Below are positions 14,516-64,000 of a stretch of 64,000 nucleotides of DNA, one piece after another (the first letter of the stretch is position 1; each line of letters starts with the position of its first letter). The notes below the pieces were generated by a model, which saw nothing but the letters and a program-made list of their open reading frames with translations, made no database searches and was not told the DNA's origin. The stretch lies in the IMG/VR virus record IMGVR_UViG_3300033143_006101, positions 1 to 64,000 of that record; one strand, given 5' to 3'. Position numbers and translations under genes: made by a program.

Positions 14516-14887
14516 ATGCCAAGAAAAGTTAAAACTATAGGAAATGATTTACCATCTCCTAGTAGTAAGCATCAAGTTTTAGGAACTGTTTTTTTAGTAC
14601 AAGAAGGTACATCTACTGGAATTTATACTTTTAATTTTGAAGATGGTAGTATCATATACTTCGAAAATGAAATCAAACAATCTTTTGAATATCTTTTAGT
14701 GGATAACATAGGAGAAGGTAGAGTACGCTTCGCTTTTAATAAAATAGGTTTACCATTAGTTAGTTCAATAGACGGAGCAAAGACGTTGCGTGCCGGGGAT
14801 AGTTTGTATATCCAGGATTTTGTAAGAAATATCACTCTATTTTTTATAGAATCTTCTATTGTTGAATTAGTTTTAATGTCTAAATAG
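14516..14887 (+). CDS. putative small virion protein (one TSTG)
   Basis: Beta-rich ORF in the late operon. Confidence 0.5.
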   Translation: MPRKVKTIGNDLPSPSSKHQVLGTVFLVQEGTSTGIYTFNFEDGSIIYFENEIKQSFEYLLVDNIGEGRVRFAFNKIGLPLVSSIDGAKTLRAGDSLYIQDFVRNITLFFIESSIVELVLMSK

Positions 14888-14896
14888 GAGGTTATC

Positions 14897-15193
14897 ATGC
14901 CAAGTCCTTTCCAAACTAAAAAAAATTTAGAAAAAAGTATTAAGCAAAGTTACGTCAGCTCTGGGGGTATGAGAGTCAAACGATGTAAAGTAGATATTGA
15001 TAATATAGGATTAATCAAAATTTCTATGGCACTAAATCCCGGGAGTTTACCTGCTGAAGTTGTAGAAGAACTTATTTATAAAACATTCGATAGTGTGGGT
15101 GTTAAAGCATTCGTAAAAGATGGTTGGAATGATATAAGAATCGATCAGCAATCACCATCGGTTGTTAGGGTGAATGTAGAAGGATATATGTAA
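14897..15193 (+). CDS. hypothetical protein
   Basis: AGGAGG Shine-Dalgarno. Confidence 0.55.
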   Translation: MPSPFQTKKNLEKSIKQSYVSSGGMRVKRCKVDIDNIGLIKISMALNPGSLPAEVVEELIYKTFDSVGVKAFVKDGWNDIRIDQQSPSVVRVNVEGYM

Positions 15194-15195
15194 CT

Positions 15196-15648: not shown

Positions 15649-15659
15649 AGGATTATTTA

Positions 15660-15818: not shown

Positions 15819-18800
15819 ATGGCTATAATAACTTCAAAATACCATCAAGACTTAAATACAAGTTGTGGTATACATATCCCTCACTCGTTTGAATATGCTA
15901 CGTCTACTGGTAGAATAAATGCTACAGGATTAACTGCAGTAGATGTTTATAAATTAGCTCTGCAAAAAAGTGATGATACTTTATGGATTTTAACAAATCA
16001 TGGTCCTGTTACCTGGAAATTACTTGGTGGTGCTACTTGGGGTACTATTACTGGAACTTTATCCGATCAAACTGACTTGCAAGATGCTTTAGATGATAAA
16101 TCTGATACAACACATGGGCACACACATGCTTCTACTACCGGAAAAACAGCAAATGATCACCATAACCAACAGCATGCTATTGATGGGAGTGATCATACAG
16201 GCACATTGGATCACTCAGAAATAAACGACGATGAGAATACCAAGCATAGGATTATAAATGATGCAGATACGAGTGTTACTGAGTTATGGTCAGCTGATAA
16301 AATAAATACTGAACTCGGGACAAAAACTAGTACAGGTCATACACATGAAGAATCAGATATTACTGATTTAGATCATGATGCTCAAAAAATTAAGGGAGTT
16401 ATAGTCGATGACTCGGCCAAAGCGGATGGAAAGGTACTAACATATGAATCCTCAACTGGAGAGATAATATATGGTGATGTAGTAACTACTGATGAGAAGG
16501 TTAAGGCAAGTGCGGGTGATCCTACAACAGGATATTTAGATGCTAAAGTTGACAATGCAACTATAGAAATAAGTGCTAATAAATTAAAAGTTAAAGATAG
16601 TGTATTTTCAAGCACGGGCCATGCCCATACTGAATCGGATATAACAGATTTGGATCATTATGATAGTTCTGATTTCTCTACAGATTTTGGGAATGCCGAT
16701 CTTGCAAATCTTGGTACTAAAAACCACAGTGATCTTAATGATGATGAAGTCGCACAGCACCGTATTATAAATGATTCAGGAACTAGTGCTACTGAACTCT
16801 GGTCAGCTGATAAAATCAACGCAGAGTTGAATACTAAAACTTCAACTGGATATGTGTTAGATCAATTCACAGATATGAAAGAGCCCACCGGATTTCCCAA
16901 TAGAACAGATAGTACTATATCGTTCTCTGATTCAAGCCCAGACAGAACTTTTACTATTGCTCCGGCAGTAAGTACTTTTGACTACTATATTAAAGGAGTA
17001 AAGTATACAAAATCTGGTGCGGTGACACGGCAAATAACTGACGACGAAGGATTGCACTTTATATATTTTGATGGGGAAACCCTTACATCGACAACTACCT
17101 GGAGTGATATTCTTTTTACTGATTATGCCATAGCATCAATAGTTTATTGGGATGATGACAACAATTTACATGTATACTTCGCAGACGAACGACATGGCAT
17201 AACCATGGATGGGGCGATGCATAAACTGTGGCACGATATTATTGGATGTGCGTGGGAAGAAGGATTAGCTTTAGGAAACATGACTGTAAATGGTAGTGGT
17301 GATGTTAATAGCCACGCCCAGTTCTCTGTATCTGATGGAGAAATACATGATGAAGATTTGGAACATGAGATAGAAGATGGAAGTCCTCAGGATTTAAGTA
17401 CCATCGCACAGATACCTATTATGTATCGCTCTGGTGCTACTGGCGTATGGCGTATGAAAGCAGCAGATGACTTCCCAATCATATATGATGGGACTGCTGG
17501 TTATAATCCAACAGGTGGCAACGATAGAGTACCCTATAACGAATGGACTGGTAGTACTTGGCAACTCATAGAAGTAGGATCAGATAATGACTTTGTTCTC
17601 GTTCATTATTTTGCTACTAATGATACCGAACACCCTATTATTGGAATACAAGGGCAAGATGAGTATACAAATCTCGGCAATGCTAGAGAAGGTGCAACTA
17701 CCGAAATAAATAACCTAGTGACTTCAGGTCTACCAACTGCTGAGTTTACACCAATAGCTACATGTATTTTTCAAACTAATGATGACGGTTATACTAATAC
17801 TCCTCATGCAAAAATAAGAAGCACTGATACTGGAGATGATTATGTAGATTGGAGAGGTTCAAAATTATCTCAATCTGCGGGTACTAGCAGTCACCCAAAC
17901 CTATCTGAATTAGGCTTCGATGAATCAGGCCATAACGGATTCCAGAGAGAAACATATCAAGATACTTCTAATCCTGATGCAGACCATGATAGTGCAGATA
18001 CTAATGCTATAGGTATAAAATTCAGAGCAGGTGACTTCTGGGAAAACACAAGCACGGATATCGTATATATATGCCTTGATGCTACAGCTACTGCTGCAAT
18101 ATGGAACGCGATTGTAGATGTGAGTACAGGCCAAACTCTTACAAATAAAACTCTAACTACACCTACTATTGGCGACTTGACAAATGCTACACATGACCAT
18201 ACTGATAATGCGGGTGGTGGTGTTCTAAATCACTCAGACTTGAACGATGACGAAGCTACAAAACATAGACTTATAAATGACTTGGATACTTCCGCAACCG
18301 AGTTATGGTCCTCAGATAAGATTAATACTGAACTTGGGACAAAGACTTCAACAGGCCACACCCATACAGAAAGTGATATTACAGATCTCGATCACGATGC
18401 CCAGAAAATTAAAGGTGTTATTGTTGATGATTCAGCAAAGGCTGATGGGTACGGATTAGTTTATGAAAGTTCTACGGGAAATATTATATATTCGGCTAGT
18501 GCTGGTGGAACAGACAATAATGCTATTCATGACAATATAGCTGGCGAAATATCTATTATTACAGCAAAGAGTTCTCCGACAGGCTCAGATAAGCTTTTGA
18601 TAGAAGATGCTGCAGATACCAATAAAAAGAAGAGCATAGATATTCAAAATCTTCCACTTAGGCCATTGACCGATGCTTATATTTGGGTTGGGATCGGTGG
18701 AGTTGAAACAGCTGTACCTTTGGCTCATACTCATAACCATGCGACTGATATTACTAATGTTCTTCCAGATCAACATCATAATGAAGATCATCAGGCCAGA

Positions 18801-20942
18801 CATAATAGTGGGGGTGCCGATGCGTTAAAACTTGATGATTTAGCTACTCCCGATGACAATACAGATCTAAACGCCACAACTTCTGCACATGGTTTATTGA
18901 AAAAACTTGATAATGACGCAACCCATTTTCTTGACGGACAGGGAAACTGGAGCACACCAGACCATGCTAAGTTATTAAACCTTGATTATGTGGGCTCAGA
19001 ACATACAGGGTTTATGCGTGATGCTTATCTAACAACTTCAGATCCTACGGAAGAAAATGATAATGCAGACACGGCTGCCCTGGGTCGGGAGTTTAATGAA
19101 GGTAACGCTTGGGTCAATACCTCTTCGGGTCGGGTGTTTGTTTGTAAAGATGCTTCACTAGGCGAGGCTATATGGTATGAGGTAGGTGCGTATGATATGG
19201 ATATGCTAACTGGTTATACTATGAAATATATTTCAGACGAAGAAGTTGAGATTGCTTTCGGTTACTGTAGAGATAATAATGATACTTGGAATATTGATTC
19301 ACATATTCCTTTGACGATTGATATAACTGACAGCGGGAAAAATGGATTAGATGTTGATAGTGTTACAGCAAACTCATGGTATTTTGTTCATGTTATTAAG
19401 AATCCGACTACCCTGGAAGTGGCTGGACTATTCTCTCTTAGTCAGTACAAGCCAACTCTTCCGAGTGGCTTTACAGTATTTAGAAATATCGGAGCGTTTC
19501 CGACAGATGGAACAAGTGATTTAATAGCAGGCCATACAGTAGGGGAAGGACTGGATAAATATTTTATATATGATATAAGACATGAGATGGCGTATGCTGA
19601 TACTACTGGTTCGTGGGAGGATGTTGATTTAAGCAGTCGTGTTCCTCCTGATGTGCGGCTGGTGGAGTTAGGATTTTCAACTCCGTCTGGTGGAGATGAT
19701 GGAATTTATGTAAGAGAAAAAATATCAGGTCAAGGGTCAACTGATTATCAATTAGATATACAATTATCCGGTGGGCCAGGTGCGTGTACTAGTAGATGTG
19801 GCTGTGATGAAGATCAGATTATTCAGTGGAACTCGTATTGGGGTGGCGGTGCATGGTATCTGTATGTGTTAGGATTTTATATATCGTTAGCTGCGACAAA
19901 ATTTGTAGGTATATATTGGGAAACAAGTGACTTCGATGAAAGTCAGCAGATAGATTTTGATACAACAGCTTCCGGTGCGAATGTATCGGGTAATGTTACA
20001 AACTTCCCAGTATGTGTAAGGATAACAGACACAGATATTTTAGATGCAGTAAGAGATGGTGCTCCTGATATAAGATTTCTTGATAAGGATGGAACAACAT
20101 GGCTGGACTATGAAGTTGAGAAATGGGATAAGGTCGGCGAAGAAGCAGTTGTTTGGGTATTGGTTCCACAGATAGATGGCAATAAAGATGACGATTATAT
20201 CACTATGTATTATGGTAATATTTGGGTACAAGATGGTCAGGATAGCAAGGCTGTGTTTAGTATTGCTAATGGCTTTCTTGGAGTATGGCACATGAATCAA
20301 GATCCATCTGTAGAGGATATACACGACAGTTCTGAAAAAGGAAATGATGGTGTACCTACTGCTAATATGGAAGATTATGATTTGATGGCAGGCCCAATAA
20401 ATAAGTCTATTGATTTTTATGTTGATGGCTCTGAATATATAAATGTAACAGGTTTTGATGAAGATATGACTGATGCGACTTTGAGTGCGTGGGTATATGT
20501 AGATACAGAAGAAGATACGGTCAAGGGCGTGTTGTTCAGCAGAGGTACAGATACTTGCGGATTACACTTGTCAGATGATTCTGGTGATAATAGAGTTTGC
20601 TATCACTGGGATGGGGATGCTGGTGCTTGGGGTTGGCAAGGTGGCGGTATTGTAGATGCAGAGGAATGGAACTTTGTCGCCATGACTATTGATGCAGATG
20701 CGGACGATACAGGGTATGTTGGAAAGAACGACGGTGATTGGGATAGTGCAACAAACTCTATAACTACTGGAACGGTTACTCTGGACGATTTAAGGATAGC
20801 AACGGATGAGGCATCCGCATCCAGAGGGTTCGATGGTAAAATTGCAGAAGTAAGAATTGAGAGTGTTATACGAACAGACGACTGGTTGAAGTTGTGCTAT
20901 ATGAATCAGAAAGCGACTGATAAGTTAATAAGTTTTCCATAA
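15819..20942 (+). CDS. large fibre/receptor-binding protein with His-rich repeats and C-terminal DUF2341-like and LamG-like domains
   Basis: WGTITGTLSDQTDLQ, HxH(E/T)ESDITDL repeats, NFPVCVR...DIRFLDKDG...YEVEKW...ITMYYGN, F(D)GKIAEVRI. Confidence 0.75.
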   Translation: MAIITSKYHQDLNTSCGIHIPHSFEYATSTGRINATGLTAVDVYKLALQKSDDTLWILTNHGPVTWKLLGGATWGTITGTLSDQTDLQDALDDKSDTTHGHTHASTTGKTANDHHNQQHAIDGSDHTGTLDHSEINDDENTKHRIINDADTSVTELWSADKINTELGTKTSTGHTHEESDITDLDHDAQKIKGVIVDDSAKADGKVLTYESSTGEIIYGDVVTTDEKVKASAGDPTTGYLDAKVDNATIEISANKLKVKDSVFSSTGHAHTESDITDLDHYDSSDFSTDFGNADLANLGTKNHSDLNDDEVAQHRIINDSGTSATELWSADKINAELNTKTSTGYVLDQFTDMKEPTGFPNRTDSTISFSDSSPDRTFTIAPAVSTFDYYIKGVKYTKSGAVTRQITDDEGLHFIYFDGETLTSTTTWSDILFTDYAIASIVYWDDDNNLHVYFADERHGITMDGAMHKLWHDIIGCAWEEGLALGNMTVNGSGDVNSHAQFSVSDGEIHDEDLEHEIEDGSPQDLSTIAQIPIMYRSGATGVWRMKAADDFPIIYDGTAGYNPTGGNDRVPYNEWTGSTWQLIEVGSDNDFVLVHYFATNDTEHPIIGIQGQDEYTNLGNAREGATTEINNLVTSGLPTAEFTPIATCIFQTNDDGYTNTPHAKIRSTDTGDDYVDWRGSKLSQSAGTSSHPNLSELGFDESGHNGFQRETYQDTSNPDADHDSADTNAIGIKFRAGDFWENTSTDIVYICLDATATAAIWNAIVDVSTGQTLTNKTLTTPTIGDLTNATHDHTDNAGGGVLNHSDLNDDEATKHRLINDLDTSATELWSSDKINTELGTKTSTGHTHTESDITDLDHDAQKIKGVIVDDSAKADGYGLVYESSTGNIIYSASAGGTDNNAIHDNIAGEISIITAKSSPTGSDKLLIEDAADTNKKKSIDIQNLPLRPLTDAYIWVGIGGVETAVPLAHTHNHATDITNVLPDQHHNEDHQARHNSGGADALKLDDLATPDDNTDLNATTSAHGLLKKLDNDATHFLDGQGNWSTPDHAKLLNLDYVGSEHTGFMRDAYLTTSDPTEENDNADTAALGREFNEGNAWVNTSSGRVFVCKDASLGEAIWYEVGAYDMDMLTGYTMKYISDEEVEIAFGYCRDNNDTWNIDSHIPLTIDITDSGKNGLDVDSVTANSWYFVHVIKNPTTLEVAGLFSLSQYKPTLPSGFTVFRNIGAFPTDGTSDLIAGHTVGEGLDKYFIYDIRHEMAYADTTGSWEDVDLSSRVPPDVRLVELGFSTPSGGDDGIYVREKISGQGSTDYQLDIQLSGGPGACTSRCGCDEDQIIQWNSYWGGGAWYLYVLGFYISLAATKFVGIYWETSDFDESQQIDFDTTASGANVSGNVTNFPVCVRITDTDILDAVRDGAPDIRFLDKDGTTWLDYEVEKWDKVGEEAVVWVLVPQIDGNKDDDYITMYYGNIWVQDGQDSKAVFSIANGFLGVWHMNQDPSVEDIHDSSEKGNDGVPTANMEDYDLMAGPINKSIDFYVDGSEYINVTGFDEDMTDATLSAWVYVDTEEDTVKGVLFSRGTDTCGLHLSDDSGDNRVCYHWDGDAGAWGWQGGGIVDAEEWNFVAMTIDADADDTGYVGKNDGDWDSATNSITTGTVTLDDLRIATDEASASRGFDGKIAEVRIESVIRTDDWLKLCYMNQKATDKLISFP
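16210..18491 (+). repeat. diverged internal duplication of an ~88-aa module (~16210-16473 and ~18229-18491; partial copy ~16724-16851)
   Basis: TELWSxDKINTELGTKTSTGHTHxESDITDLDHDAQKIKGVIVDDSAKADG...YESSTG in both full copies. Confidence 0.85.
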
Positions 20943-20951
20943 GAGGTTAAA

Positions 20952-21479
20952 ATGAGCAAGATACCATATCAAATATTAGTAGAGTCATCGACAGGAAAAG
21001 TTCTATCAGCTGGGTATACCAGACTTAGAGCTGGTGAAGGACAGACAAGGTATAAAAATGAGCAGTTACCTGCTGGAGCAAATCTAGCAAATGAGACTTG
21101 GTATCGAACAAGTACAGGTTATGAGACTAATACATTAGTTACAAATAAAGCAAATAGAATAAAAGAAATTGATGAAAAAACTAAAGAGCTGATTGAACAA
21201 GGGTTCGCGTTTGATGGGCACATATTTAGTTTGTCTTTGGAAGCACAAAAAAACTTCCTAGCTTTAAAAACTGTGTCTGCTTTGATGTCCTGGCCAAAAG
21301 CATTGACTACAAAATGTGATATGGAGTATCTGTTAGCAGAAGAAGATTTAGATGCTTGTATAGGAACAGGGCTTGCTGTTGTAAATGGCTATCTTGATTC
21401 TGGTAGAGCTTTAAAAATAAGTACTAATGCTGCTACAACACAGGAAGAGCTTGACGCTATTGTAGATAATAGAACATAA
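20952..21479 (+). CDS. DUF4376-like tail fibre assembly/associated protein
   Basis: Follows the fibre gene; GFAFDGHIFSL...C-terminal AATTQEELDAI. Confidence 0.6.
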   Translation: MSKIPYQILVESSTGKVLSAGYTRLRAGEGQTRYKNEQLPAGANLANETWYRTSTGYETNTLVTNKANRIKEIDEKTKELIEQGFAFDGHIFSLSLEAQKNFLALKTVSALMSWPKALTTKCDMEYLLAEEDLDACIGTGLAVVNGYLDSGRALKISTNAATTQEELDAIVDNRT

Positions 21480-21488
21480 AGAGGGGCT

Positions 21489-22223
21489 ATGAAAAAGTTG
21501 ATATTTGTAATACTGCTAATAGTACTATCTAGTAGTACTTATGCAGAAAGTAATCCATTTCAATTATATAAGCCTAATTATATAATAGCTGGTAATCAAG
21601 ATGATCAGGTAAAAGGACAGGTATCTTTTAAATATGCTTTAATATATCCTGAGAATATAGGGTTATATTTTGGTTATTCCCAATTAATGTTTTGGGATGC
21701 ATATAAAACATCGTCTCCTTTCAGAGATATTAATTTTAACCCGGAATGTTTTTGGTTTCATCAATTTAATTATGGCATGCTAGATAATATACAAGTTGGT
21801 CTTATTGAACATAAATCTAATGGTAGAGATGGTGAAGAATCCAAGGGATGGAATAGAAGTTATTTACGATCCCAGATTAGTTATGGTACTAGAATAAACA
21901 TAGGATTTATTGGCGAAGTTTTTTATTTATATGGATTAAGTAGTAACAATGAAGATATTGGTGAATATATAGGTTTCTATGAAGCAGAATTATTTATAAA
22001 ATTCAAAAAAAGAAGAACAAATTGGACTAGTAGAGAATCTATATATATTCGTGGTGGATCTAGTTTATCTAAAGGTTGGGTTGAAGGTGGTATCAAATTT
22101 AGATTAGTATCATATAAAATTCAACCTAATTTGTATTTACAAGTATTTCATGGTTATGCAGAAAGTTTATTAGAATATGATGAGAAAGAAACAGCTATTC
22201 GTCTTGGTGTAACTATGGAATAA
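21489..22223 (+). CDS. pldA: outer membrane phospholipase A (OMPLA)
   Basis: Signal peptide; YKPNY, KGQVSFK, YFGYSQ, SSPFRDINFNPE, catalytic HKSNG, WNR, GYAESLLEY. Confidence 0.9.
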   Translation: MKKLIFVILLIVLSSSTYAESNPFQLYKPNYIIAGNQDDQVKGQVSFKYALIYPENIGLYFGYSQLMFWDAYKTSSPFRDINFNPECFWFHQFNYGMLDNIQVGLIEHKSNGRDGEESKGWNRSYLRSQISYGTRINIGFIGEVFYLYGLSSNNEDIGEYIGFYEAELFIKFKKRRTNWTSRESIYIRGGSSLSKGWVEGGIKFRLVSYKIQPNLYLQVFHGYAESLLEYDEKETAIRLGVTME

Positions 22224-22245
22224 TAGCTATGGATCCATAGTTAAG

Positions 22246-22420: not shown

Positions 22421-22933
22421 ATGGCTGATTATAAAGGTGTTATAAGATTTATCGGAGAAAACAACGACTTCGCTTTAGTTGAGGAAACTCGTATTTATCA
22501 AAATAATATTGATACAAGTACAGGAATTGGAACAGGAGATGGGTCTGAAAGAACGTTCTCTGGATCATTAGAACCAGTTGTAGAAGAAGGCGAACTCGTA
22601 ATTAACGTAGATGGTGCAGCACAAAATGCTTCTGATTCTGGTGGAGTTATTTCTGGTAGTGATATCACAACTTCATCAGGATATGTCAGTGCTATTGATT
22701 ATGCTTCTGGTGCAATTCAACTTACTTTCACTGTTGCAGCAACACCACCAGCAGATAAAGCAGTAGATGCAGTATATCAATATAGTGCACCTTCAGAATT
22801 TCCAGAAGGATTAAAGTTTATAAAAGGTGACTTTTCAAACTTTAGTGTTGGGGATTCTATAGGTTACGATTACGATGTCGATGCAGACCTTAAAGATGGT
22901 TATTATATATCAGAAGCTTATATAGAAGCTTAG
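22421..22933 (+). CDS. putative virion decoration protein (beta-sandwich)
   Basis: GTGDGSERTFSG...IDYASGAIQLTF...P...YQY pattern; strong Shine-Dalgarno; TSTG and TSSG. Confidence 0.5.
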   Translation: MADYKGVIRFIGENNDFALVEETRIYQNNIDTSTGIGTGDGSERTFSGSLEPVVEEGELVINVDGAAQNASDSGGVISGSDITTSSGYVSAIDYASGAIQLTFTVAATPPADKAVDAVYQYSAPSEFPEGLKFIKGDFSNFSVGDSIGYDYDVDADLKDGYYISEAYIEA

Positions 22934-24379: not shown

Positions 24380-24534
24380 TTAATTGTAGATGTAGAATAA
24401 CAAAAGAATTGTACAACAAATTTTTATTAAAAATCAGAAATGAAGGTTGGACAATACAACAAGCCATAGCAACTCTAATTTTAGAGTTTACTAATGGCAA
24501 CCTTGATATTGAGGTACCAGATGGCAACGTGTAA
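24355..24534 (+). CDS. putative ribbon-helix-helix DNA-binding protein (59 aa, not in track)
   Basis: MAKTYQKLINCRCRITKELYNKFLLKIRNEGWTIQQAIATLILEFT: strand-helix-G-helix pattern. Confidence 0.5.
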   Translation: MAKTYQKLINCRCRITKELYNKFLLKIRNEGWTIQQAIATLILEFTNGNLDIEVPDGNV

Positions 24535-24856
24535 TATCGTTGGAAAACTTATAAATGGATCCGGAGAAGAGGTTGATGGAATATTTGTACATGCAGTTTG
24601 TGCTGATTCTCCAGCTATTATACAAAATACTAGTACCGGTATAATTCCAGAGAATATTAGAGAACTAACAACTAGTACTGGTATATTTGAATTAACATTA
24701 GTTAGAAATGTAAATTATATAGTTCATATCCCTGAAATGGGATTTAAAAAAACCATACTTGTACCAGATGAAGCGGGTCCTGTTAATTTATGGGGATTAA
24801 CAGATATTCTTGTAAGTGGGGATCCTACACCAACTGATACAGGTGATGATTGGTAA
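24521..24856 (+). CDS. putative virion protein, prealbumin/Ig-like fold (two TSTG)
   Basis: Start MATCNIVG after GAGGT; TTSTGIFELTLVRN. Confidence 0.55.
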   Translation: MATCNIVGKLINGSGEEVDGIFVHAVCADSPAIIQNTSTGIIPENIRELTTSTGIFELTLVRNVNYIVHIPEMGFKKTILVPDEAGPVNLWGLTDILVSGDPTPTDTGDDW

Positions 24857-28698: not shown

Positions 28699-28744
28699 TT
28701 TTTTAACAGTAATGTATTAAGAAAATGACTTGAGAGGTATAATT

Positions 28745-55738: not shown

Positions 55739-55748
55739 GAGATAATTC

Positions 55749-58700
55749 ATGCCATATATTACAGTTCCTACCAGAACCCAAACACTGTCATCAATGTATG
55801 CAGATATAAATCAGCTACAATCTAATATAAATGCGATGTTAGATGCATCCAAAGCGTTTACTGATTTAGCTGTTGATGAAGATGTAACATTTAGCGGTCT
55901 TACAGCAATGCGATTACTTGCTATTGATTCATCTAATAAAGTAGTAAATACTAATTTAAATCAATGGATAAATGGTACCGGTAATCAAATTACTGTTACA
56001 GATAATGGTAATGGAACAGTTACTATGTCTGCTCCTCAAGATATTCATTCTGGGGCATCTCCTACTTTTGCTGACTTGACTCTATCTTCTCCCTCTACAA
56101 TATATGGTTTAGATCATGATAGTTTTGCTGGTTATGTGGCAGCAGAGCATTTAAATTGGACAGTAAATACCGGAAGTGTTATTGATGATAATAACATAGC
56201 TGCAAGTTCAATTACACAACATGAAGGTAGTATTACTCATAACAATTTAGCAGGAGTTACAGCTAAAGAACATATAGATTGGACAGTTGATGCTGATCCA
56301 TATAATGTACATAAATTAAATATCACATGGGATTCTATAACACAACATGAAGCTCAGATCAATCATGACAATTTATTTGGATTTGTAGCACTTGAACATA
56401 TCGATTGGACTAATGCAACTCAGAATATAGATACAAGTGGTACAATTAATGGTACTACTTTAAAATATAATGAAATAGATATAAATAATAGTAACGCTCT
56501 TAGTAATGTAGTCTATTTAGATATAGACAATACATTTCTAGAAAATATGATTATAACAAAAGATCTTACTGTTATAGGTGATTTTATTGTAATAGGTGAT
56601 ACATATGCTGCAGAAGTTGAAACAGTGCTTATTTCAGATAATCTTGGTATTATTAATTATGGTGAGACTGGTACAGGCATAACAGCTGGTTTTGCTGGTT
56701 GGGAAGTAGATAGAGGTATTTATGCCGCTCCTTATAGATGGGGATTTGAGGAATCTACTGATACTTGGAGATTAGGTGAATCCTATTATGATATAGATGT
56801 AACTACTTCAACCGGAACTTTTGTAGTAGGAGATATAATTTTAACATCTACTGGAGAACGTGGTAAGGTGTTTGATATTACTGGAAGCGTTTTATCTACA
56901 GGTGTTCATGTAGGTGTTTTTTCTACAGGAATGTATGTATATACTTCTACTGGTGCAGCTGGAACAATCACATCCGTATCAGAAGTTGAATCTTTGCAAG
57001 CAGTTGCAACTCGAGAAGATAGTCCTACTTTAAATGGAATACCTTATTGGAATAATACACTTAAACAATTTAATACAAGTTCGAGTATTGTTTGGGATAC
57101 TTCAACGACAGGAGCAGCTAAAGGAGATCTATTAATACGTAGTAGTACTGGATTTACAAGATTAGCTGTTGGATCCAATGGACAAACAATAATAGCGGAT
57201 AGCTCTGAAACTACAGGGATTAAATGGGCCGGGCATGATTCACTTGATGAATATGTTGCCAATGAACATATAGATTGGACGGGGGCCAGTGCTGGAACAA
57301 TTGATCCTACAAATTTAGGATTACATGCAAGTCGACATGAAATTGGTGGGGCTGATCTTATAGATCATGATAATTTAACAAACACACATGATCTTACAAC
57401 TGACATTGATCACGATACAATTACAAATAATCATAATCTTACAACTGATATTGATCATGATCAATTAACAAATTTTGTTGCAAATAAACATATAGATTGG
57501 ACAGGAGCTAGTAATAATCTAGTTACATCTGGATACATTAGAATATCTAATAATGAAATTAGATTTTATGACAATGGATCCAATTATGTAGGATTTAAAG
57601 CTCCCGCTTTAACAGGAGATCAAATTTGGACACTACCTGATTCTGATGGAACTACAGGTCAAGTCCTAGCAACAAGTTCTGGTTTATTATATTGGTCTGA
57701 TATAGTTGCAACTTCTGTCATTTCGGATTCAGATGGTAATACATTATTAGGAACCGGTACAGGTACTAATTTAAGTTCACCTGATGCAACATATAATACT
57801 TTTATTGGTGTTAATGCTGGCTATGATGTCACAACAGGTGATTATAATTGTTATATAGGATATTATGCTGGTGAGAATACAGGAGTTGATGTACAATACC
57901 AAACATTTATTGGTGCCTATGCTGGACAGAACAACACTGCTAGTTATGCTACAGCAATTGGATATCAAGCCGGTTTAGCTTGTGCAGGTACTGGTGTAGC
58001 TATAGGGTATCTAGCTGGACAATCTGGTTTAAGTTATGGTGTGGCTATAGGACAGGAGTGTGCTACTGGAGGATTAGGATCAAGAAGTGTAGCAATAGGT
58101 TATAAATCATGTTTTGGTAATGCTAATGGAGCTCAAGATTGTGTCTTTGTAGGATATACAGCCGGTTTAAATAATGCAGGTGGTGATGGAAATACAGGAG
58201 TGGGTGCTAGTGCATGTAAAAATGCTGGTGCTAAAACTGGTAATACTGCTATAGGTAACCATAGTCAATATGATGCTTCTGGTAATTATAATACATCCTT
58301 TGGTGCTCATTCACTATATGATTGTGGTGGTGGTTATAATGTAGCAGTAGGCTATGAAGCTGGACATTTTGTAACTAATAATTATAATATACTTATAGGA
58401 TTTCAAGCTGGTTATAGATGTCAAGGTAGTTATAATATAGGTATTGGACGAAAAGCATGTGGAAATGATACAGGAGGAACTAAAGATTATAATGTTGCTA
58501 TAGGAGATATCTCCCTAACTGCAATAACTACTGCTGTTGATAATACTGCTATAGGTACTAATTCAGGAAGTGTTTTAACTACTGGTTCTTCTAATGTGTT
58601 AATAGGTCATGATGCTGGTAGTACTTTAACAACTGAATCAAATCTACTTTATATAGAAAATACAAATTCTGCAACACCCCTCATTTATGGTGAATTTGAT

Positions 58701-59363
58701 AATGATTTATTAAAAATAAATGGTATTCTTCAAATAGATCAAGCTGATGCAGATACAAATATTCTAACTTTTGAAAGTTCAGATATAGCACATGCTTTAA
58801 CAAGTTGGATGCCCACAAATACTTTTACTGCTTTTACTAAATTATCCGCAACTGGTGGTGGACTTCAAGTATCTGTTGCTACTGATGGTGATGAAACAAT
58901 TCAAACAGCTCTATCTACTCGAGTAGCATTAAGAGATGTTGCAGATACTTCTACATCTACTGGAAGTATTGGTGTTATAGAATTCGATAGTTATCAACAT
59001 GATGGTGCTGATAATCTATCTGCTATAGCTGATGACGGTGATATTTTCTGTGTAAGAAATAATGGTGATACCAAATTCATTATAAAAGGTGATGGAGATA
59101 TTTATTATGATGGTGCAGATCAAGGAACTTATGATACTGAAAATGATATAGCATTAACTGGAGCAATAAATAATCCCAATAGCCAGGAATACGGTAGATT
59201 ACAAGAACTTGGTATTGTAGATAATGGTTTTATTAGTAGAAAGAAATTAGACGCTCTTACTGTTGGTTCAATAGGCCAACTTTGGAATATAATTAGACAT
59301 TTATCTAAGAAGTTTGATGTATCAGAAGATGAGCTTTTTGAAATGGCCAAAAATTATAATTAA
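55749..59363 (+). CDS. tail fibre/adhesin with His-rich repeats and YadA-like Gly-Asn beta-repeats
   Basis: HD.L..FVA.EHIDWT repeats; N(T/V)AIG..AG repeats. Confidence 0.75.
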   Translation: MPYITVPTRTQTLSSMYADINQLQSNINAMLDASKAFTDLAVDEDVTFSGLTAMRLLAIDSSNKVVNTNLNQWINGTGNQITVTDNGNGTVTMSAPQDIHSGASPTFADLTLSSPSTIYGLDHDSFAGYVAAEHLNWTVNTGSVIDDNNIAASSITQHEGSITHNNLAGVTAKEHIDWTVDADPYNVHKLNITWDSITQHEAQINHDNLFGFVALEHIDWTNATQNIDTSGTINGTTLKYNEIDINNSNALSNVVYLDIDNTFLENMIITKDLTVIGDFIVIGDTYAAEVETVLISDNLGIINYGETGTGITAGFAGWEVDRGIYAAPYRWGFEESTDTWRLGESYYDIDVTTSTGTFVVGDIILTSTGERGKVFDITGSVLSTGVHVGVFSTGMYVYTSTGAAGTITSVSEVESLQAVATREDSPTLNGIPYWNNTLKQFNTSSSIVWDTSTTGAAKGDLLIRSSTGFTRLAVGSNGQTIIADSSETTGIKWAGHDSLDEYVANEHIDWTGASAGTIDPTNLGLHASRHEIGGADLIDHDNLTNTHDLTTDIDHDTITNNHNLTTDIDHDQLTNFVANKHIDWTGASNNLVTSGYIRISNNEIRFYDNGSNYVGFKAPALTGDQIWTLPDSDGTTGQVLATSSGLLYWSDIVATSVISDSDGNTLLGTGTGTNLSSPDATYNTFIGVNAGYDVTTGDYNCYIGYYAGENTGVDVQYQTFIGAYAGQNNTASYATAIGYQAGLACAGTGVAIGYLAGQSGLSYGVAIGQECATGGLGSRSVAIGYKSCFGNANGAQDCVFVGYTAGLNNAGGDGNTGVGASACKNAGAKTGNTAIGNHSQYDASGNYNTSFGAHSLYDCGGGYNVAVGYEAGHFVTNNYNILIGFQAGYRCQGSYNIGIGRKACGNDTGGTKDYNVAIGDISLTAITTAVDNTAIGTNSGSVLTTGSSNVLIGHDAGSTLTTESNLLYIENTNSATPLIYGEFDNDLLKINGILQIDQADADTNILTFESSDIAHALTSWMPTNTFTAFTKLSATGGGLQVSVATDGDETIQTALSTRVALRDVADTSTSTGSIGVIEFDSYQHDGADNLSAIADDGDIFCVRNNGDTKFIIKGDGDIYYDGADQGTYDTENDIALTGAINNPNSQEYGRLQELGIVDNGFISRKKLDALTVGSIGQLWNIIRHLSKKFDVSEDELFEMAKNYN

Positions 59364-59375
59364 GGAGAATATACA

Positions 59376-59669: not shown

Positions 59670-59709
59670 AGTATACTTTAAATAAAATTTTAAACTAAGG
59701 AGAAATGAA

Positions 59710-60192: not shown

Positions 60193-60203
60193 AGAGGAAA
60201 GAG

Positions 60204-63200
60204 ATGGATAAAGTCAAATTTGACGGTAATATTATTAACCTGTATAGTGAAGACTATGAGTATATGCAGAATGCAGCTGAATCAGAAGCTCAGCAAGCAG
60301 TACGCCAAACAATAAAAACCCCGTACATTCCTTCAGTCATTAGAGGTTTTAATATAATGGTTAGTATTGCTGACAGTACAAAAATTGAGATGTACCATGA
60401 GGATAATATAGGCACAGCTGTCAATTACTATGGTACTATCATAGAAGACCAGGCAGGATTAGATTTAATTTCTCTAAGTGATTATACTGCCAGTACTGTT
60501 AATTATATTTATTTAAAATATTATAAAGTTGATGCTTCTTTCGATAAGCTCACTTCAACAATTATTGAAGGATCCAAATTAGCAATAGATTTATCAGATT
60601 TCTCAAAGGAATACAACCGACATCTTGATAAATGGACTATTGTAGCTTATACTGCTGCAGAATATGCAGGTCTTAGCGAAGAGAACCAACAAAATCTAAT
60701 TTGCTTAGGTAGTACTACCGCTCAAGGAATCGGAGTTGATTTAACAGTTACAACAAGTACTGGAAGGATTCAGGCACTTACACAAATCGCTCCAGGTTCT
60801 GTTGACGCAAGCCATCTTTCAGGCATCTTTCACGCAACACAACAACAAGTAGATGAATCAGTAATATATAATGATAATTATAGCGGAACACCCATTAATC
60901 TAGAAGAAGATTTAAACGAACTTAGAACAGAAGTAAGAAAAATAAAAGGAACAGGAGATTATAGAGATTCTACTGATGCTAACTTACAATCATTTGATAC
61001 AACTGTTAATAAAGTACATACAAATGGTATACTATCTTCTGGTTATAATTTAGATTATATTATTACATCTTCAGGAACAGCCATTCAATTAAAAACTGGA
61101 AAAGCTTTAGTTGATGGTAGTGTCGTTGTCGTAAACGAAGATAATCCAATTGCATTAAATCTGGCAGCTGCAGATAGAACTACTATAGGAGATTATGCAA
61201 CAAAAACTGGAGCCGAAGCTCATTATGCTGGAGCTCAACCAGCAATCATTACATTAGATCATGCTCCTATTGCTAATCTATTAGTAGTTGAGCAAGCTAC
61301 AGGTACAATATATGCAAGTGGAACACATTATATTGTTGATGAAGCTACTGGTATTATAACTACAATATCTGGTAAAGATATAGTAAATGAAACAGTTGAT
61401 TGTTATTATGATTGGGGTAAAGCTAGATATGATGTAGTAGAAGTTAATTCTGCTGGAGAGTTCAGTCTTACCGCAGGTATACCAGATGATGATCCAGAAT
61501 TACCTACTTTAAGTGGTAGTGATATATTACGTTTATATGTTGTTGAAAGACCTGTACTAACAGAAACTATTGTAGCCCAAAATGTTTTTGATGTTAGAAA
61601 ATATGTACAAACAGTAAGAGAAAGATTTGAAATAAATCCTGATGATTATGTAAATACAGAATGGGGTGTTAATAAAGTATCTTATATAGACAGTAGTGGT
61701 GATATAGATACTGGTTGGGCAAATTGGTCCTTAATTACTACGTCATCCGGGCGAGCTGCAGTATCTTCAACAAGCAGTACAAAAATACGTACAGTAATTT
61801 TTACAGATGAAGATGATGAATTGTGGATTAGATTAAAAAAACATGATGTAACAGGAACTATAACAATTGCGTATGAAGAAATATCTGGAAGTGGTATTCT
61901 TAATGAAGCAGTTGATATTAATTTATTTAATAATACAACATTAGAAAACTTACAAACATTTGTAGCAAAAGGATTTTCTAAAGGTTATCATATTGTAGAA
62001 TTAACTTTAAATGACGCAGTAGAATTAGAATTCTATGGTTTTGTAGTCGGCAAATCAGATATGTATTATGGAATTACCGGTGTAGAGCTTGGCGTATTAA
62101 AAACAAATAGATTAGATACCGCAGCTTTAAATACTCAATGGGAAGTTGGATATGAATATAAAATATCGGATCTTGTAATGGTAGGCCAAGGTATTTTTCG
62201 TTGTGCAATAGAACATACTTCAAGTAGCAATTTTACAACAGATTTTGATGCAGCTTATTGGGAAGTTCCTTTTGAAGATGGAACTGTTACTACTGCTAAA
62301 TTTGCAGAGGGTGCTATTCAAGAAATAATGGCATCAACAATTACTAACTTACGAAATAGGCTTGATGCATCAGAAAATCAACTCCTAGAAATCAGCTTAC
62401 AAAATTTTTATCAATCACAACAAACAAATGTAAATGCTAATTTCTTTTTGGAAACCTTTTTAAATGAAGATAAAAATGATGCTACTTTAGAAAATTCAGC
62501 TAATAATCTTGTACAAATCATGGATGATACTGACTGGAATAACAACTGGAAAGAACGAGAAGGTGTTCCTAATTTTAAAAATGGATTTATGCGTCCACCA
62601 AAACAATCTTATATGTTAGAAATAATTGATGAATATAATCTTAAAGGGATTGGGCAAATTTCAAAGGGTGGAATAAGTCAATATGATACTACAAGTAATT
62701 GTTATTGGTTAATGACTAATAATGGTTCTAATGGTATTGGAGAAATAGTTAAACTTTCTCATAATATGAAAGATGGGAGAGTGGAAGTATTAGATAGATG
62801 GTATTTAAATGCAAAAGGAAGTAGTTATTACTGGTCAGGAATAGATTCGGATGAATCATATGTTTATGCTGTTGTACATGGAGATTCACTTTCTACATCA
62901 GCTATATATTCATTTGCTATAAATTCTGATGGTACAATAGGGTATAGCCATGTTCCTAATGGAGGCACAATATATGTAGGATTAACAGGAAGTATAACTA
63001 CTGTTAATGGAAGTGATCAAATAACTGTATCTTCTACTAACCCGTATCGAGTTGGTTTAAGGATAGATGCTATTGGAATACCTGCAGGATCTTATATTAC
63101 AAAAATAATAAGTTCAACTGTATTTGAAATATCAGAAGATGCTACAGCAGATGGTTCACCTAGTGCAGAATTTAATGATTATTATAGGGCACATCCAATA

Positions 63201-64000
63201 GCTGCTAGTGGATCAGATGTTGGTTATTATACTGATTGTTGTATTTGGGATGAGAATGATATAATGGTGCTTGTTTGTAATGGTACAACAAATGTAAATT
63301 TAATTTCTTTAGCACAAGGTACTCTTACAACTGGGACAGCTAGTAATCAAACAGGTTTAGAAAAATATATAGGAGGATCACTATCTAAATGCAGGAGTAT
63401 AACAAAATACGGAAATGATTTATATACAAGAGTTAATGATAATACAGATACTTATAGATTTATATATAAATTTGATGTAACTACTGATATAGATACTAAT
63501 ATTTTTATAAAAGCAAGCGGAAGATGGCATACTTCAAGAAATTTTGAGCCTAGAACAGCATCCGGAGGAATAACAATAGGTTATCATGGAGATTTATTAG
63601 AAATAGAAAGTACAACTAATACTGGTGATTTTATATCTCATCGATCATTAAAGAACGCACTCTGGGCAGAGAATCAAGTAGTAGGAGAAATACAAACTAC
63701 TGCTGGGCCTACAACTGATGATAATAGAGCAATTTGTTTTGATGGCGATTATGTGTGGTATAGTGCTAATAATAATAATACAAATGCGGTAAGACTATAT
63801 AGAAGAAATGTATCTACTGGTGCAGAAACGTATACGACTGTTAATGCCGGGAATTGGGATCATATATCAGGCATGTGTTGGGATGATGTTGGAGGAACAG
63901 ATTATTTCTTCATACTCGGAGAGTCTTCGATCTCTACTGGTAGATCAATTACAAGAACAGTTTTAGAAAGTGCATTAGGAGGAACTTTAAATTTCACCTC
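60204..64000 (+). CDS. large structural/fibre protein, truncated by the window end (>1260 aa; not in track)
   Basis: Open frame from MDKVKFDG to the window end; CBM5/12-like segment WEVGYEYKISDLV...FRCAIEHTS...YWE; beta-propeller-like C-terminal part. Confidence 0.75.
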   Translation, partial: MDKVKFDGNIINLYSEDYEYMQNAAESEAQQAVRQTIKTPYIPSVIRGFNIMVSIADSTKIEMYHEDNIGTAVNYYGTIIEDQAGLDLISLSDYTASTVNYIYLKYYKVDASFDKLTSTIIEGSKLAIDLSDFSKEYNRHLDKWTIVAYTAAEYAGLSEENQQNLICLGSTTAQGIGVDLTVTTSTGRIQALTQIAPGSVDASHLSGIFHATQQQVDESVIYNDNYSGTPINLEEDLNELRTEVRKIKGTGDYRDSTDANLQSFDTTVNKVHTNGILSSGYNLDYIITSSGTAIQLKTGKALVDGSVVVVNEDNPIALNLAAADRTTIGDYATKTGAEAHYAGAQPAIITLDHAPIANLLVVEQATGTIYASGTHYIVDEATGIITTISGKDIVNETVDCYYDWGKARYDVVEVNSAGEFSLTAGIPDDDPELPTLSGSDILRLYVVERPVLTETIVAQNVFDVRKYVQTVRERFEINPDDYVNTEWGVNKVSYIDSSGDIDTGWANWSLITTSSGRAAVSSTSSTKIRTVIFTDEDDELWIRLKKHDVTGTITIAYEEISGSGILNEAVDINLFNNTTLENLQTFVAKGFSKGYHIVELTLNDAVELEFYGFVVGKSDMYYGITGVELGVLKTNRLDTAALNTQWEVGYEYKISDLVMVGQGIFRCAIEHTSSSNFTTDFDAAYWEVPFEDGTVTTAKFAEGAIQEIMASTITNLRNRLDASENQLLEISLQNFYQSQQTNVNANFFLETFLNEDKNDATLENSANNLVQIMDDTDWNNNWKEREGVPNFKNGFMRPPKQSYMLEIIDEYNLKGIGQISKGGISQYDTTSNCYWLMTNNGSNGIGEIVKLSHNMKDGRVEVLDRWYLNAKGSSYYWSGIDSDESYVYAVVHGDSLSTSAIYSFAINSDGTIGYSHVPNGGTIYVGLTGSITTVNGSDQITVSSTNPYRVGLRIDAIGIPAGSYITKIISSTVFEISEDATADGSPSAEFNDYYRAHPIAASGSDVGYYTDCCIWDENDIMVLVCNGTTNVNLISLAQGTLTTGTASNQTGLEKYIGGSLSKCRSITKYGNDLYTRVNDNTDTYRFIYKFDVTTDIDTNIFIKASGRWHTSRNFEPRTASGGITIGYHGDLLEIESTTNTGDFISHRSLKNALWAENQVVGEIQTTAGPTTDDNRAICFDGDYVWYSANNNNTNAVRLYRRNVSTGAETYTTVNAGNWDHISGMCWDDVGGTDYFFILGESSISTGRSITRTVLESALGGTLNFT

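Follow-up and report, generated by a model that had tools for sequence, protein, structure and literature searches.

The stretch of DNA analysed here (the window) comprises 64,000 nucleotides, positions 1 to 64,000 of the IMG/VR virus record IMGVR_UViG_3300033143_006101, from an uncultured jumbo phage. Its late region encodes fibre and other tail proteins, and a sugar-biosynthesis and glycosyltransferase island lies inside the tail-fibre operon, between gpJ and the fibre genes. The features relevant to this work are given below in window coordinates; the motif refers to [ST]S[ST]G.

9195-10151, minus strand: D-glycero-beta-D-manno-heptose-7-phosphate kinase (HldA / RfaE domain I; TIGR02198, 368 bits, above the cut-off of 345), which probably feeds the GT9 domain of the island with ADP-heptose.
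14516-14887, plus strand: small late protein (123 aa) with one motif (TSTG at residue 32, base 14609) and no family hit.
15819-20942, plus strand: fibre protein of 1707 aa with eight [ST]S[ST]G sites, two pairs of which come from an internal duplication; the C-terminus holds DUF2341 and a LamG-like lectin domain.
20952-21479, plus strand: tail-fibre-like protein (175 aa) with two motifs (PHROG 1348 tail fiber, 8e-6).
22421-22933, plus strand: late protein of 170 aa with TSTG at residue 32 and TSSG at residue 84.
24494-24856, plus strand (start at 24494 or 24521): late protein of about 111-120 aa with two motifs.
28730-30106, plus strand: tail sheath (PHROG 279, 1e-17, covering residues 131-456), with SSTG (residue 55) and TSSG (residue 101) in the N-terminal 130 residues, outside the conserved sheath core.
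43354-44817, plus strand: baseplate wedge protein (gpJ / gp6 / gp47 type; PHROG 6) with three motifs at residues 270, 284 and 335, plus NSTG at 369.
44873-46111, plus strand: divergent GT-B (GT4-like) glycosyltransferase without any motif, a candidate initiating or extending transferase.
46115-47185, plus strand: NAD-dependent sugar epimerase/dehydratase (SDR; PF01370, 3e-35), below every equivalog cut-off.
47201-47824, plus strand: TylF-like sugar O-methyltransferase (PF05711, 7e-21).
47835-48587, plus strand: weak sulfotransferase-like protein (PF13469, 5e-4, below cut-off); a similar gene lies in the island of the locus L118.
48588-49367, plus strand: weak GT2-like protein (PF00535 and PF13704, about 6e-4, below cut-off).
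49389-51128, plus strand: fusion of a GT2 domain (PF00535, 1e-23) and a GT9 (heptosyltransferase-type) domain (PF01075, 3e-16), shared with only one other lineage.
51130-51462, plus strand: small cytidine/dCMP-deaminase-like protein (PF00383, 8e-6), to which no role in the island could be given.
51466-52191, plus strand: class I SAM methyltransferase (PF13489, 2e-16).
52218-53180, plus strand: minimal Maf-type (PF01973 / DUF115) glycosyltransferase of 320 aa, whose stop overlaps the start of the next gene.
53177-55738, plus strand: fibre-like protein of 853 aa with two motifs.
55749-59363, plus strand: fibre or tailspike-like protein of 1204 aa (PHROG 4636 tail spike, 1e-11) with six [ST]S[ST]G sites and two further STG.
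60204-64000, plus strand: fibre protein with three motifs inside the window; the complete ORF is 1951 aa, ends at contig base 66059 and has more sites.

Initially, our interest in this locus was aroused by a preliminary description that reported a recurrent [S/T]-S-T-G peptide on the late proteins, and our recount confirmed that observation. Every count by gene was reproduced exactly: one STG in 14516, eight in 15819, two in 20952, one in 22421, two in 24494/24521, one in 25856, one in the sheath (28730), four in gpJ (43354), two in 53177, seven in 55749 and three in 60204. These amount to 32 STG, of which 19 are TSTG and six are SSTG, in addition to six TSSG. The site in 25856 reads QQSTG and is not the full motif, and four of the eight copies in 15819 form the two duplicated pairs. 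To evaluate chance occurrence, 1000 within-protein shuffles were performed, which gave [ST]STG a mean of 1.14 (maximum 5) against 25 observed and TSTG a mean of 0.64 (maximum 4). TSTG is the commonest of all 4-mers, and its 19 copies compare with at most 7 for the commonest 4-mer in any shuffle. The 31 [ST]S[ST]G sites are encoded by 29 different 12-mers with codon usage equal to the background, and orthologous sites switch between TCN and AGY serine codons. The signal therefore lies at the level of the peptide and not of the DNA.

The motif is confined to outer virion proteins. None was found in the early genes or in any of the 10,003 aa of non-structural proteins of the contig, none in the 4,328 aa encoded between sheath and gpJ, and none in 73 island proteins (21,469 aa) of six lineages, against 107 in 26 neighbouring gpJ and fibre proteins. 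The names tube, tape measure, hub and spike, which the preliminary description gave to motif-free proteins, are positional only, as no family search confirmed them.

In an effort to define the specificity of the motif, all variants were counted in 62,360 aa. TSTG occurred 62 times, SSTG 25 times and TSSG 22 times, each against about 2 expected, whereas TTTG (1), TTSG (3), STSG (3), SSSG (2) and TSTS/TSTT (2-4) remained at background, as did TSNG, TSDG and every other residue at positions 2 and 4. The motif is thus sharp, [T>S]-S-[T>S]-G, and local richness in serine, threonine and glycine is ruled out. The flanks show only 2-fold hydrophobic preferences (I/V/L at -2, -1, +1 and +2) and the carriers are unrelated proteins, indicating that the motif is not part of a repeated domain.

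Comparison with relatives demonstrated the same enrichment in every relative that carries a phage-specific Maf-type (PF01973) glycosyltransferase of 300-355 aa: 140 were observed against 9.8 expected in 72,300 aa from 24 loci, about 15 times more often than chance. By contrast, 79 loci with other Maf-like genes, several of them phage fibre regions, gave 28 observed against 29.8 expected. All motif-rich loci belong to one phage lineage, and as no sister lineage without the Maf gene was found to break the link, this co-occurrence could reflect shared ancestry. Sites come and go between orthologues. Five orthologues of 53177, at 40-50% identity, contain 12 sites, each present in one to four of them, with unrelated residues where a site is missing and an apparent independent gain at one column; the orthologues carry 3-6 motifs at shifting positions. 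The orthologue of 22421 keeps the first site, has TSTG in place of TSSG and gains a third site through a 2-residue insertion, the orthologue of 24494 keeps the second site only, and the sheath orthologue at 73% identity lacks both sites. This turnover suggests selection on the motif itself, although the flanking columns are not more variable than average.

The gpJ sites lie in a part that makes this protein about 100 residues longer than the best-matching solved homologues of simple baseplates (343-391 aa). Foldseek matched the predicted model (pLDDT 88.8) to baseplate proteins of phiCD508, Mu and T4. The sites at 270, 284 and 335 are present in 48, 34 and 47 of 64 homologues (53-75%), and G273 and L274 are invariant. 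In the model, sites 270 and 335 sit exactly at strand-to-helix junctions, a place where Ser/Thr and Gly could serve as a structural cap.

Analysis of the island elaborated on the enzymes that accompany the motif. In the six lineages compared in detail, the Maf-like gene and the fibre-like gene of the 53177 type are always present and are the only families found in the island neighbourhood of all six; the fibre-like gene directly follows the Maf-like gene in four of them. The Maf-like protein matches Maf both by sequence profile (PF01973, 5e-34; FlagModPseD domain, 1e-14; best PDB profile hit 5mu5) and by predicted fold (model pLDDT 91.6; Foldseek 5mu5, E 6e-10, TM 0.60 over 299 columns). The GT-B protein (44873-46111) follows gpJ wherever that end of the island was sampled and is duplicated next to the fibre genes in two lineages. 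It has no Pfam hit itself and 86 homologues restricted to the clade, found on the same long contigs as the Maf clade, but an exhaustive profile search reaches proteins whose matched region is Glycos_transf_1 / Glyco_trans_1_4. The sugar-pathway genes between these two enzymes differ between lineages, as in flagellin glycosylation islands.

These results partly support the interpretation given in the preliminary description, which proposed that the enzymes at 44.9-53.2 kb build a glycan on the motif and coat the virion exterior. The restriction to outer virion proteins, the association with one clade of Maf-type enzymes across independent lineages and the presence of a real sugar island agree with that proposal. 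However, the cassette as a whole is not the conserved partner. Only the Maf-like gene and the GT-B gene are conserved, whereas the other enzymes, including the GT2+GT9 fusion likened to Aah/TibC, vary. Coating of the whole virion is likewise not shown, as the motif is absent between sheath and gpJ and no capsid genes were found in the 83 kb read.

We consider it more likely than not that a clade of uncultured jumbo myoviruses O-glycosylates the exposed proteins of its own tail in the host cytoplasm at a short sequon, [T/S]-S-[T/S]-G. The carriers would be the fibres, the insertion part of gpJ, the N-terminal region of the sheath and several small late proteins. In this view, the minimal Maf-type enzyme, which has only the catalytic core of the flagellin glycosyltransferases, and the divergent GT-B enzyme form a constant core. 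One of the two, most likely the Maf-like enzyme, would recognise the tetrapeptide and attach the first sugar. The mosaic island between them would make and extend a lineage-specific glycan, here by means of a dehydratase/epimerase, O-methyl- and possibly sulfo-transferases, GT2 enzymes and a GT9 heptosyltransferase domain. The evidence is circumstantial. Our analysis establishes the motif with its specificity and restriction, its co-occurrence with the Maf clade, the enzyme families and the gene order, while it remains an inference that the motif is modified at all, which enzyme reads it, which residue is the acceptor and whether the glycan serves shielding, solubility or host-surface interaction. 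Characterised Maf enzymes transfer CMP-activated nonulosonic acids, yet among the island genes put through family searches, which was not every island gene, none matched a nonulosonic-acid synthase or its cytidylyltransferase. In addition, the phage enzyme lacks the N- and C-terminal domains of Maf that are thought to bind flagellin.

Alternative readings appear less likely. The tetrapeptide could be a structural or assembly element of these tail proteins, such as a tight turn, a helix cap or a docking site for an assembly chaperone, with the sugar island acting on something else. The beta-strand-like flanks, the lack of hypervariability around the sites, the strand-to-helix junctions in the gpJ model and the retention of the gpJ sites in most homologues would all fit. 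We nevertheless regard this as unlikely because a turn or cap does not need one exact tetrapeptide, and because the motif occurs in unrelated folds, is gained and lost between orthologues, is absent between sheath and gpJ and shows no excess in the 79 control loci. About equally unlikely is that the motif is modified but not read by the Maf-like enzyme. The GT-B protein may start the glycan, as GtfA does on serine-rich adhesins, or the modification may not be a sugar at all, for example phosphorylation or another group. The distribution and duplication of the GT-B family, the missing nonulosonic-acid pathway among the genes searched and the absent substrate-binding domains favour this reading. 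Against it, no kinase or other protein-modifying enzyme is conserved next to the carriers, and the Maf-like gene is translationally coupled to a carrier gene in this window and directly precedes the 53177-type gene in four of six lineages. The GT-B alternative is, moreover, a variant of the main explanation rather than a true rival.

Least likely, and in our view improbable, is that the island modifies host envelope glycans or phage DNA while the motif is an unrelated, inherited quirk of the fibre proteins. Phage glycosyltransferases are best known for DNA glucosylation and O-antigen conversion (cited in PMC12619734), and a small deaminase-like gene sits in the island. However, the island lies inside the late tail operon, between gpJ and the fibres, in every lineage, and Maf-type enzymes are protein glycosyltransferases. 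An inherited quirk also fails to explain repeated gains of the exact motif at new positions or serine codon-family switches at kept sites.

A motif-directed sugar coat on the virion, which is the hypothesis raised here, has not been described for phages, but related systems exist. The Maf (motility-associated factor) flagellin O-glycosyltransferases and their glycosylation islands in Campylobacter, Helicobacter, Aeromonas and Magnetospirillum share the catalytic core (PF01973), including a G-P-S-[LIV]-D signature that aligns with 5mu5. They also share a cytoplasmic enzyme acting on Ser/Thr of a surface-exposed filament protein before assembly, which for the phage is inferred, and a constant transferase next to a highly variable sugar-gene island. 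The phage enzyme is about half the size (300-355 aa against 400-670 aa), lacks the N- and C-terminal Maf domains (PF20157, PF26154) and is phage-encoded; no bacterial genome among 185,579 species representatives holds this clade. Its presumed substrates are many unrelated tail proteins rather than flagellin, and no consensus sequon is known for flagellin, whereas the motif here is strict. In mycobacteriophages, phage-encoded glycosyltransferases decorate the phage's own structural proteins (Freeman et al. 2023, Cell Host Microbe; cited in PMC12619734). There the glycans are reported to sit on C-terminal parts of the capsid and tail-tube subunits, while the motif here is on fibres, baseplate and sheath; the enzyme families differ, and a defined tetrapeptide sequon shared by many proteins has, to our knowledge, not been reported there.

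Chlorovirus PBCV-1 is likewise a large virus that brings its own cytoplasmic glycosylation machinery and uses attachment sites that are not the host's canonical sequon (PMC5408694). It is, however, a eukaryotic virus with N-linkage to Asn on a single major capsid protein, and its enzymes are unrelated. The autotransporter heptosyltransferases Aah/TibC (BAHT family) and GtfA/GtfB of serine-rich repeat adhesins are cytoplasmic GT-B enzymes that O-glycosylate many Ser/Thr residues of a surface fibre, and the window encodes a GT9 heptosyltransferase-type domain, a heptose-7-phosphate kinase and a GT4-like GT-B. Those systems act on long repeats without a strict tetrapeptide, and the GT9 fusion is not conserved across the motif-bearing lineages, so it cannot be the common reader. 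Finally, the general O-glycosylation of Bacteroidota also uses a short sequon shared by many unrelated proteins (D-[S/T]-[A/I/L/V/M/T]), but that system is periplasmic and transfers a lipid-linked glycan en bloc, whereas the motif here is different and no oligosaccharyltransferase is present.

Initially, we sought close relatives of the phage from which the window derives. The contig (IMGVR_UViG_3300033143_006101), whose coordinates coincide with those of the window, comprises 252,876 bp of an uncultured jumbo myovirus with about 32% G+C. No GenBank phage is close. A megablast search returned nothing, a tblastn search with the Maf-like protein returned nothing, and the sheath is only 22-30% identical to those of phage G, Myrna and Rctr197k.

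To evaluate whether the recurrent tetrapeptide exceeds chance, the window's 73 plus-strand ORFs (19,487 aa) were searched for it and compared with within-protein shuffles. The observation of the preliminary description, that STG recurs in late proteins mostly as TSTG or SSTG, held, and all of its per-gene counts were reproduced. The ORFs hold 32 STG, of which 19 are TSTG and 6 SSTG, plus 6 TSSG. TSTG is the commonest 4-mer, while the next commonest has 6 copies. In 1000 within-protein shuffles [ST]STG averaged 1.14 (maximum 5) and TSTG 0.64 (maximum 4), with no 4-mer exceeding 7. The 31 [ST]S[ST]G sites use 29 different 12-mers with background codon usage, so the signal is in the peptide.

To investigate the specificity of the motif, we pooled 191 non-redundant proteins (62,360 aa) from the window and five related lineages.

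Observed and expected 4-mers in the pooled proteins
TSTG: observed 62, expected 2.3
SSTG: observed 25, expected 2.0
TSSG: observed 22, expected 2.0
SSSG: observed 2, expected about 2
STSG: observed 3, expected about 2
TTSG: observed 3, expected about 2
TTTG: observed 1, expected about 2.8
STTG: observed 6, expected about 2.3

TSTS, TSTT, TSTA, TSTN and TSTD occur 0-4 times each, and every non-Ser residue at position 2 and every non-Gly residue at position 4 is at background. The motif is therefore [T>S]-S-[T>S]-G, apparently with at least one Thr. Because permutations of the same residues are not enriched, local S/T/G richness cannot explain it. Flanks show only about 2-fold preferences for I/V/L/T, and the sites are not copies of one domain apart from the internal duplication in the fibre encoded at 15819. 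The motif behaves as a short linear motif that is enriched on its carrier proteins, specific at each position and independent of the fold. The fibre in question (15819-20942, plus strand) has three copies of a block ELWS-DKIN ... TSTG-H-x-H-x-ESDITDLDH, whose His-rich part resembles metal-binding fibre repeats, and its C-terminus has DUF2341 and a LamG-like lectin domain.

The distribution of the motif was examined in 83 kb of the contig.

Sites by gene class, with the number expected from composition
Structural proteins (39): 15,546 aa; 34 sites observed; 2.4 expected
Early genes: 3,682 aa; 0 observed; 0.13 expected
Island proteins (the sugar-gene island): 2,734 aa; 0 observed; 0.05 expected
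Genes after the fibres: 3,587 aa; 0 observed; 0.12 expected
Genes between sheath and gpJ (a subset of the structural class; positionally tube, tape measure, hub and inner baseplate): 4,328 aa; 0 observed

At the density of the remaining structural proteins, P(0) for the sheath-to-gpJ genes is 2e-6, and at the structural density P(0) for each non-structural class is 3e-4 to 3e-3. Scaling instead by each class's own composition makes these absences only moderately significant (by our estimate about 0.01-0.02 for the three non-structural classes combined), and the classes were also defined after seeing the data. The cleaner test uses six lineages, in which 73 island proteins (21,469 aa) have 0 sites while 26 adjacent gpJ and fibre proteins (22,315 aa) have 107 against 6.7 expected. 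No capsid genes were identified in the 83 kb read. Walking the contig for head genes revealed DNA-metabolism genes after the fibres, and a PHROGs search of 10 further late proteins gave no hits.

In the sheath, both sites lie in the N-terminal 130 residues, outside the conserved core that the sheath profile matches, and extra sheath domains are external in solved sheaths. In gpJ (the baseplate wedge protein) the three sites lie at residues 270-338, a part that makes this 487-aa protein about 100 residues longer than the best-matching solved wedge proteins of simple baseplates (343-391 aa). Judged by secondary structure in the predicted gpJ model rather than by calculated accessibility, the sites lie at strand ends or in coil within this insertion part. 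The motif sites are internal to their proteins, not C-terminal.

Related contigs were identified through the sheath, the Maf-like gene and the fibres. In IMG/VR there are six lineages, five of whose six contigs are 3300033143_006101 (the present window), 3300017963_000192 (217 kb), 3300032053_014324, 3300022664_000223 (236 kb) and 3300037067_004595, and a scan of metagenomes added more loci. Every locus whose Maf-like protein is at least 40% identical to the window's, and that holds enough flanking sequence, is motif-rich, and one lineage has three paralogous fibres with 11, 14 and 12 sites. Pooled, 24 such loci give 140 observed against 9.8 expected. In contrast, the 79 loci with more distant Maf-like genes (35% identity or less), some of which are phage fibre regions and many of which are cellular, give 28 against 29.8. 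This also shows that the composition-based expectation is well calibrated.

Attempts to separate the motif from the Maf-like gene returned little. A search with a profile of the fibre family encoded at 53177 (the 53177-type fibre) for a sister lineage without the Maf gene returned only the same six lineages. A gpJ homologue with no motif (P0130) still sits next to the GT-B gene and the start of a sugar island on a contig that ends before the Maf position, and is therefore uninformative. The very distant Rctr197k, which has no Maf gene, gave 0 observed against 2.0 expected, which is only a weak control. Other frequent 4-mers next to distant Maf-like genes (NLVC/LVCR, VEVA and QGIQ) proved to be ordinary tandem or collagen-like repeats and not a second sequon. 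In two other viral contigs, L016 (15192-16337) and L024 (16521-20429), fibre-like proteins next to distant Maf-like genes consist of 14-residue tandem repeats with a conserved S-T-N-L-V-C-R core (up to 13 copies), a different recurring word that comes from tandem repetition rather than from scattered sites.

Comparison of orthologues elaborated on the evolution of the sites. The orthologue of the protein encoded at 22421 keeps TSTG at the same place, has TSTG where the window has TSSG, and gains SSTG through a two-residue insertion. The orthologue of 24494 keeps one of its two sites, and the sheath orthologue at 73% identity has none. Five orthologues of 53177 (38-48% identity) have 12 site columns, each occupied in 1-4 of them, and at one column only the window and a distant lineage have TSTG while the others have TNDG, TRDG or RNNG. 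In 64 gpJ homologues the three sites are present in 48, 34 and 47 sequences, and elsewhere they are replaced by TSAG, TENG, TSTS or TTTT. Kept sites use different codons, including TCN and AGY for the central Ser. This mix of conservation and turnover fits selection for the motif itself, although it does not exclude a structural role at the most conserved sites. Motif sites do not lie in hypervariable alignment regions, as flank conservation equals or exceeds the average.

The enzymes and other genes of interest are as follows.
52218-53180: Maf-like protein of 320 aa, a predicted glycosyltransferase
44873-46111: divergent GT-B glycosyltransferase
51130-51462 (plus strand): 110-aa cytidine/dCMP-deaminase-like protein inside the sugar island, with no obvious role in glycan synthesis
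9195-10151 (minus strand): D-glycero-beta-D-manno-heptose-7-phosphate kinase (TIGR02198, 368 bits, cut-off 345), the only sizeable gene on the minus strand in the early region
8322-9128: next to the kinase, a cupin with a weak match to mannose-6-phosphate isomerase
21489-22223 (plus strand): outer-membrane phospholipase A1 (OMPLA-type, PF02253, 1e-37) among the tail and fibre genes, which may be a virion-associated or lysis-related lipase and hints at a Gram-negative host
12062-12619 (plus strand): HNH endonuclease-like protein (weak IscB/Cas9 HNH-domain matches) between the early and late genes
3711-4247 (plus strand): Pth2-type peptidyl-tRNA hydrolase with a DnaJ-like zinc-finger insert
4930-5379 (plus strand): small protein with the GGQ domain of release factors (PrfH/ArfB-like), which together with the preceding ORF suggests that the phage encodes ribosome-rescue functions
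599-2404 (plus strand): 601-aa ORF combining a weak thymidylate-synthase-like segment (residues 149-214) with a LAGLIDADG domain (residues 338-395), which may be an intein or a homing-endonuclease insertion; a second LAGLIDADG gene interrupts the sugar island of the relative (L005 5551-6639)

The Maf-like protein possesses the central MAF_flag10 (DUF115, MptE-like) Rossmann-type catalytic domain of the flagellin glycosyltransferases, with matches to PF01973 (5e-34) and to the NCBIfam FlagModPseD domain (1e-14). A profile of 37 clade members hits Maf of Magnetospirillum (5mu5, 3.5e-10) with an aligned G-P-S-[LIV]-D signature. The predicted model (pLDDT 91.6) superposes on 5mu5 over 299 columns (Foldseek E 6e-10, TM 0.60), followed by the archaeal MptE kinase and, weakly, by sialyltransferases. 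The N- and C-terminal helical domains that flank the core in Maf proteins of about 400-670 aa (PF20157 and PF26154) are absent, and the fold match covers about half of 5mu5 (TM 0.32 normalised to the target). The clade has about 63 members of 275-355 aa (most 300-355 aa) in 5.8 billion proteins and is separated by a wide gap from cellular Maf proteins of 400-560 aa, which match at E 1e-21 and weaker and some of which carry the extra domains. It is absent from 185,579 bacterial and archaeal species genomes.

Sequence and profile searches of the 44873-46111 family against Pfam and the PDB gave nothing significant. Its 86 homologues are clade-restricted and lie on the same long contigs as the Maf clade. 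An exhaustive profile search linked it to proteins whose matched region is Glycos_transf_1 or Glyco_trans_1_4, and it is therefore a divergent GT-B glycosyltransferase. Members of the phage Maf clade and of the phage GT-B family are also deposited as proteins of a Methanofastidiosum MAG (P0055 and P0238), whose contigs (32,955 and 28,688 bp) are probably phage contigs that were binned wrongly.

The gene order is gpJ, GT-B, variable island, Maf-like, 53177-type fibre and more fibres. In the six lineages compared only the Maf-like and 53177-type genes are always present, while the GT-B gene follows gpJ wherever that end was sampled. In the window, the island holds an SDR dehydratase/epimerase, a TylF O-methyltransferase, weak sulfotransferase and GT2 hits, a GT2+GT9 fusion, the small deaminase-like protein and a methyltransferase. 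Two other lineages share a block with an epimerase, a HAD phosphatase, two methyltransferases, a nucleotidyltransferase and a multi-GT2 protein. Another lineage has DegT, AsnB, RmlD and an epimerase, and another has DegT, a hexapeptide acetyltransferase, an RmlC/FdtA-like cupin and a GT1-like protein. None of the island genes searched, which excluded several island genes and the rest of the 252 kb genome, matched NeuB/PseI or a CMP-sugar synthetase, and the context is a phage tail operon rather than one of flagellin genes and nonulosonic-acid (Pse/Leg) biosynthesis. The heptose-7-phosphate kinase fits the GT9 domain (PF01075, 3e-16), and together with the OMPLA-like phospholipase A1 gene it hints at a Gram-negative host.

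The best-supported reading of these results is cytoplasmic O-glycosylation of outer tail proteins at the tetrapeptide, in which the two conserved transferases would form the core and the island would determine a lineage-specific glycan. The interpretation of the preliminary description, that the enzymes of the cassette build a glycan on the motif and coat the virion exterior, is partly supported. The motif, its specificity, its distribution in the sequence read, its co-occurrence with the Maf clade, the enzyme families and the gene order rest on the analysis itself, while the modification of virion proteins, transfer of any sugar by the Maf-like enzyme, the identity of the reader and the acceptor residue are inferred. 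We favour the Maf-like enzyme as the reader because it is present in every lineage compared, belongs to a family of protein O-glycosyltransferases, and is here translationally coupled to a carrier gene. The GT-B enzyme is, however, a serious alternative. The invariant Ser at position 2 and Gly at position 4 may, speculatively, mark the acceptor and a conformational requirement. Several considerations weigh against the model. It rests on no biochemical evidence, all motif-rich loci form one lineage, and no donor pathway of the kind used by known Maf enzymes, which transfer a CMP-activated nonulosonic acid to Ser/Thr of the substrate, was seen in the island genes searched. In addition, two gpJ sites sit at strand-to-helix junctions, where a structural cap is conceivable, and flanks are not hypervariable.

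A more far-reaching reading, which we hold only tentatively, is a phage-encoded general O-glycosylation system in which a minimal Maf-type transferase reads a strict sequon (T-S-T-G) on a dozen or more unrelated tail proteins. In this view a hypervariable sugar island would give each phage lineage its own virion glycan 'serotype', and phages would gain and lose sequons the way enveloped animal viruses shift N-glycan sites. It would be the first defined O-glycosylation sequon for a Maf-family enzyme and the first sequon known for any phage. Virion glycosylation by phages is so far documented for a few mycobacteriophages, and bacterial cytoplasmic O-glycosyltransferases of the Maf type have no known acceptor rule. 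If the reading of sequon-directed glycosylation is right, a four-residue sequon that works on many folds would be a compact tag for glyco-engineering in bacteria and would give a direct handle on how Maf-type enzymes choose their sites. It would also show that environmental jumbo phages diversify the sugar coat of their tails, which bears on host recognition, aggregation and escape from binding proteins.

Literature searches for a phage sequon, for Maf-type or DUF115 enzymes in phages and for glycosylated tails found nothing relevant, and the report on 'moraphages' notes core glycosyltransferases in aquatic jumbo phages but no motif (PMC12619734). The predicted system, whose modification is still to be demonstrated, works like a flagellin glycosylation island moved into a phage tail operon, with a Maf-like enzyme that has the catalytic core of that family but lacks its accessory domains and its flagellin/nonulosonic-acid context. 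A GT9-like heptosyltransferase that uses ADP-heptose and is common to all substrates, as in the autotransporter heptosyltransferases Aah/TibC (BAHT), is not found, since the GT9 fusion is shared with only one of five other motif-bearing lineages. The system resembles mycobacteriophage virion glycosylation in principle only. As in that type, phage glycosyltransferase genes (Maf-like, GT-B, GT2 and GT2+GT9) lie next to structural genes, here between gpJ and the fibre genes. Glycans of the mycobacteriophage type are on C-terminal parts of the capsid and tail-tube subunits, and no motif was found here in any gene between sheath and gpJ, which include the positional tube gene, while capsid genes were not identified in the 83 kb read. 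It is like chlorovirus capsid glycosylation (PMC5408694) in that a virus uses its own rules for attachment sites.
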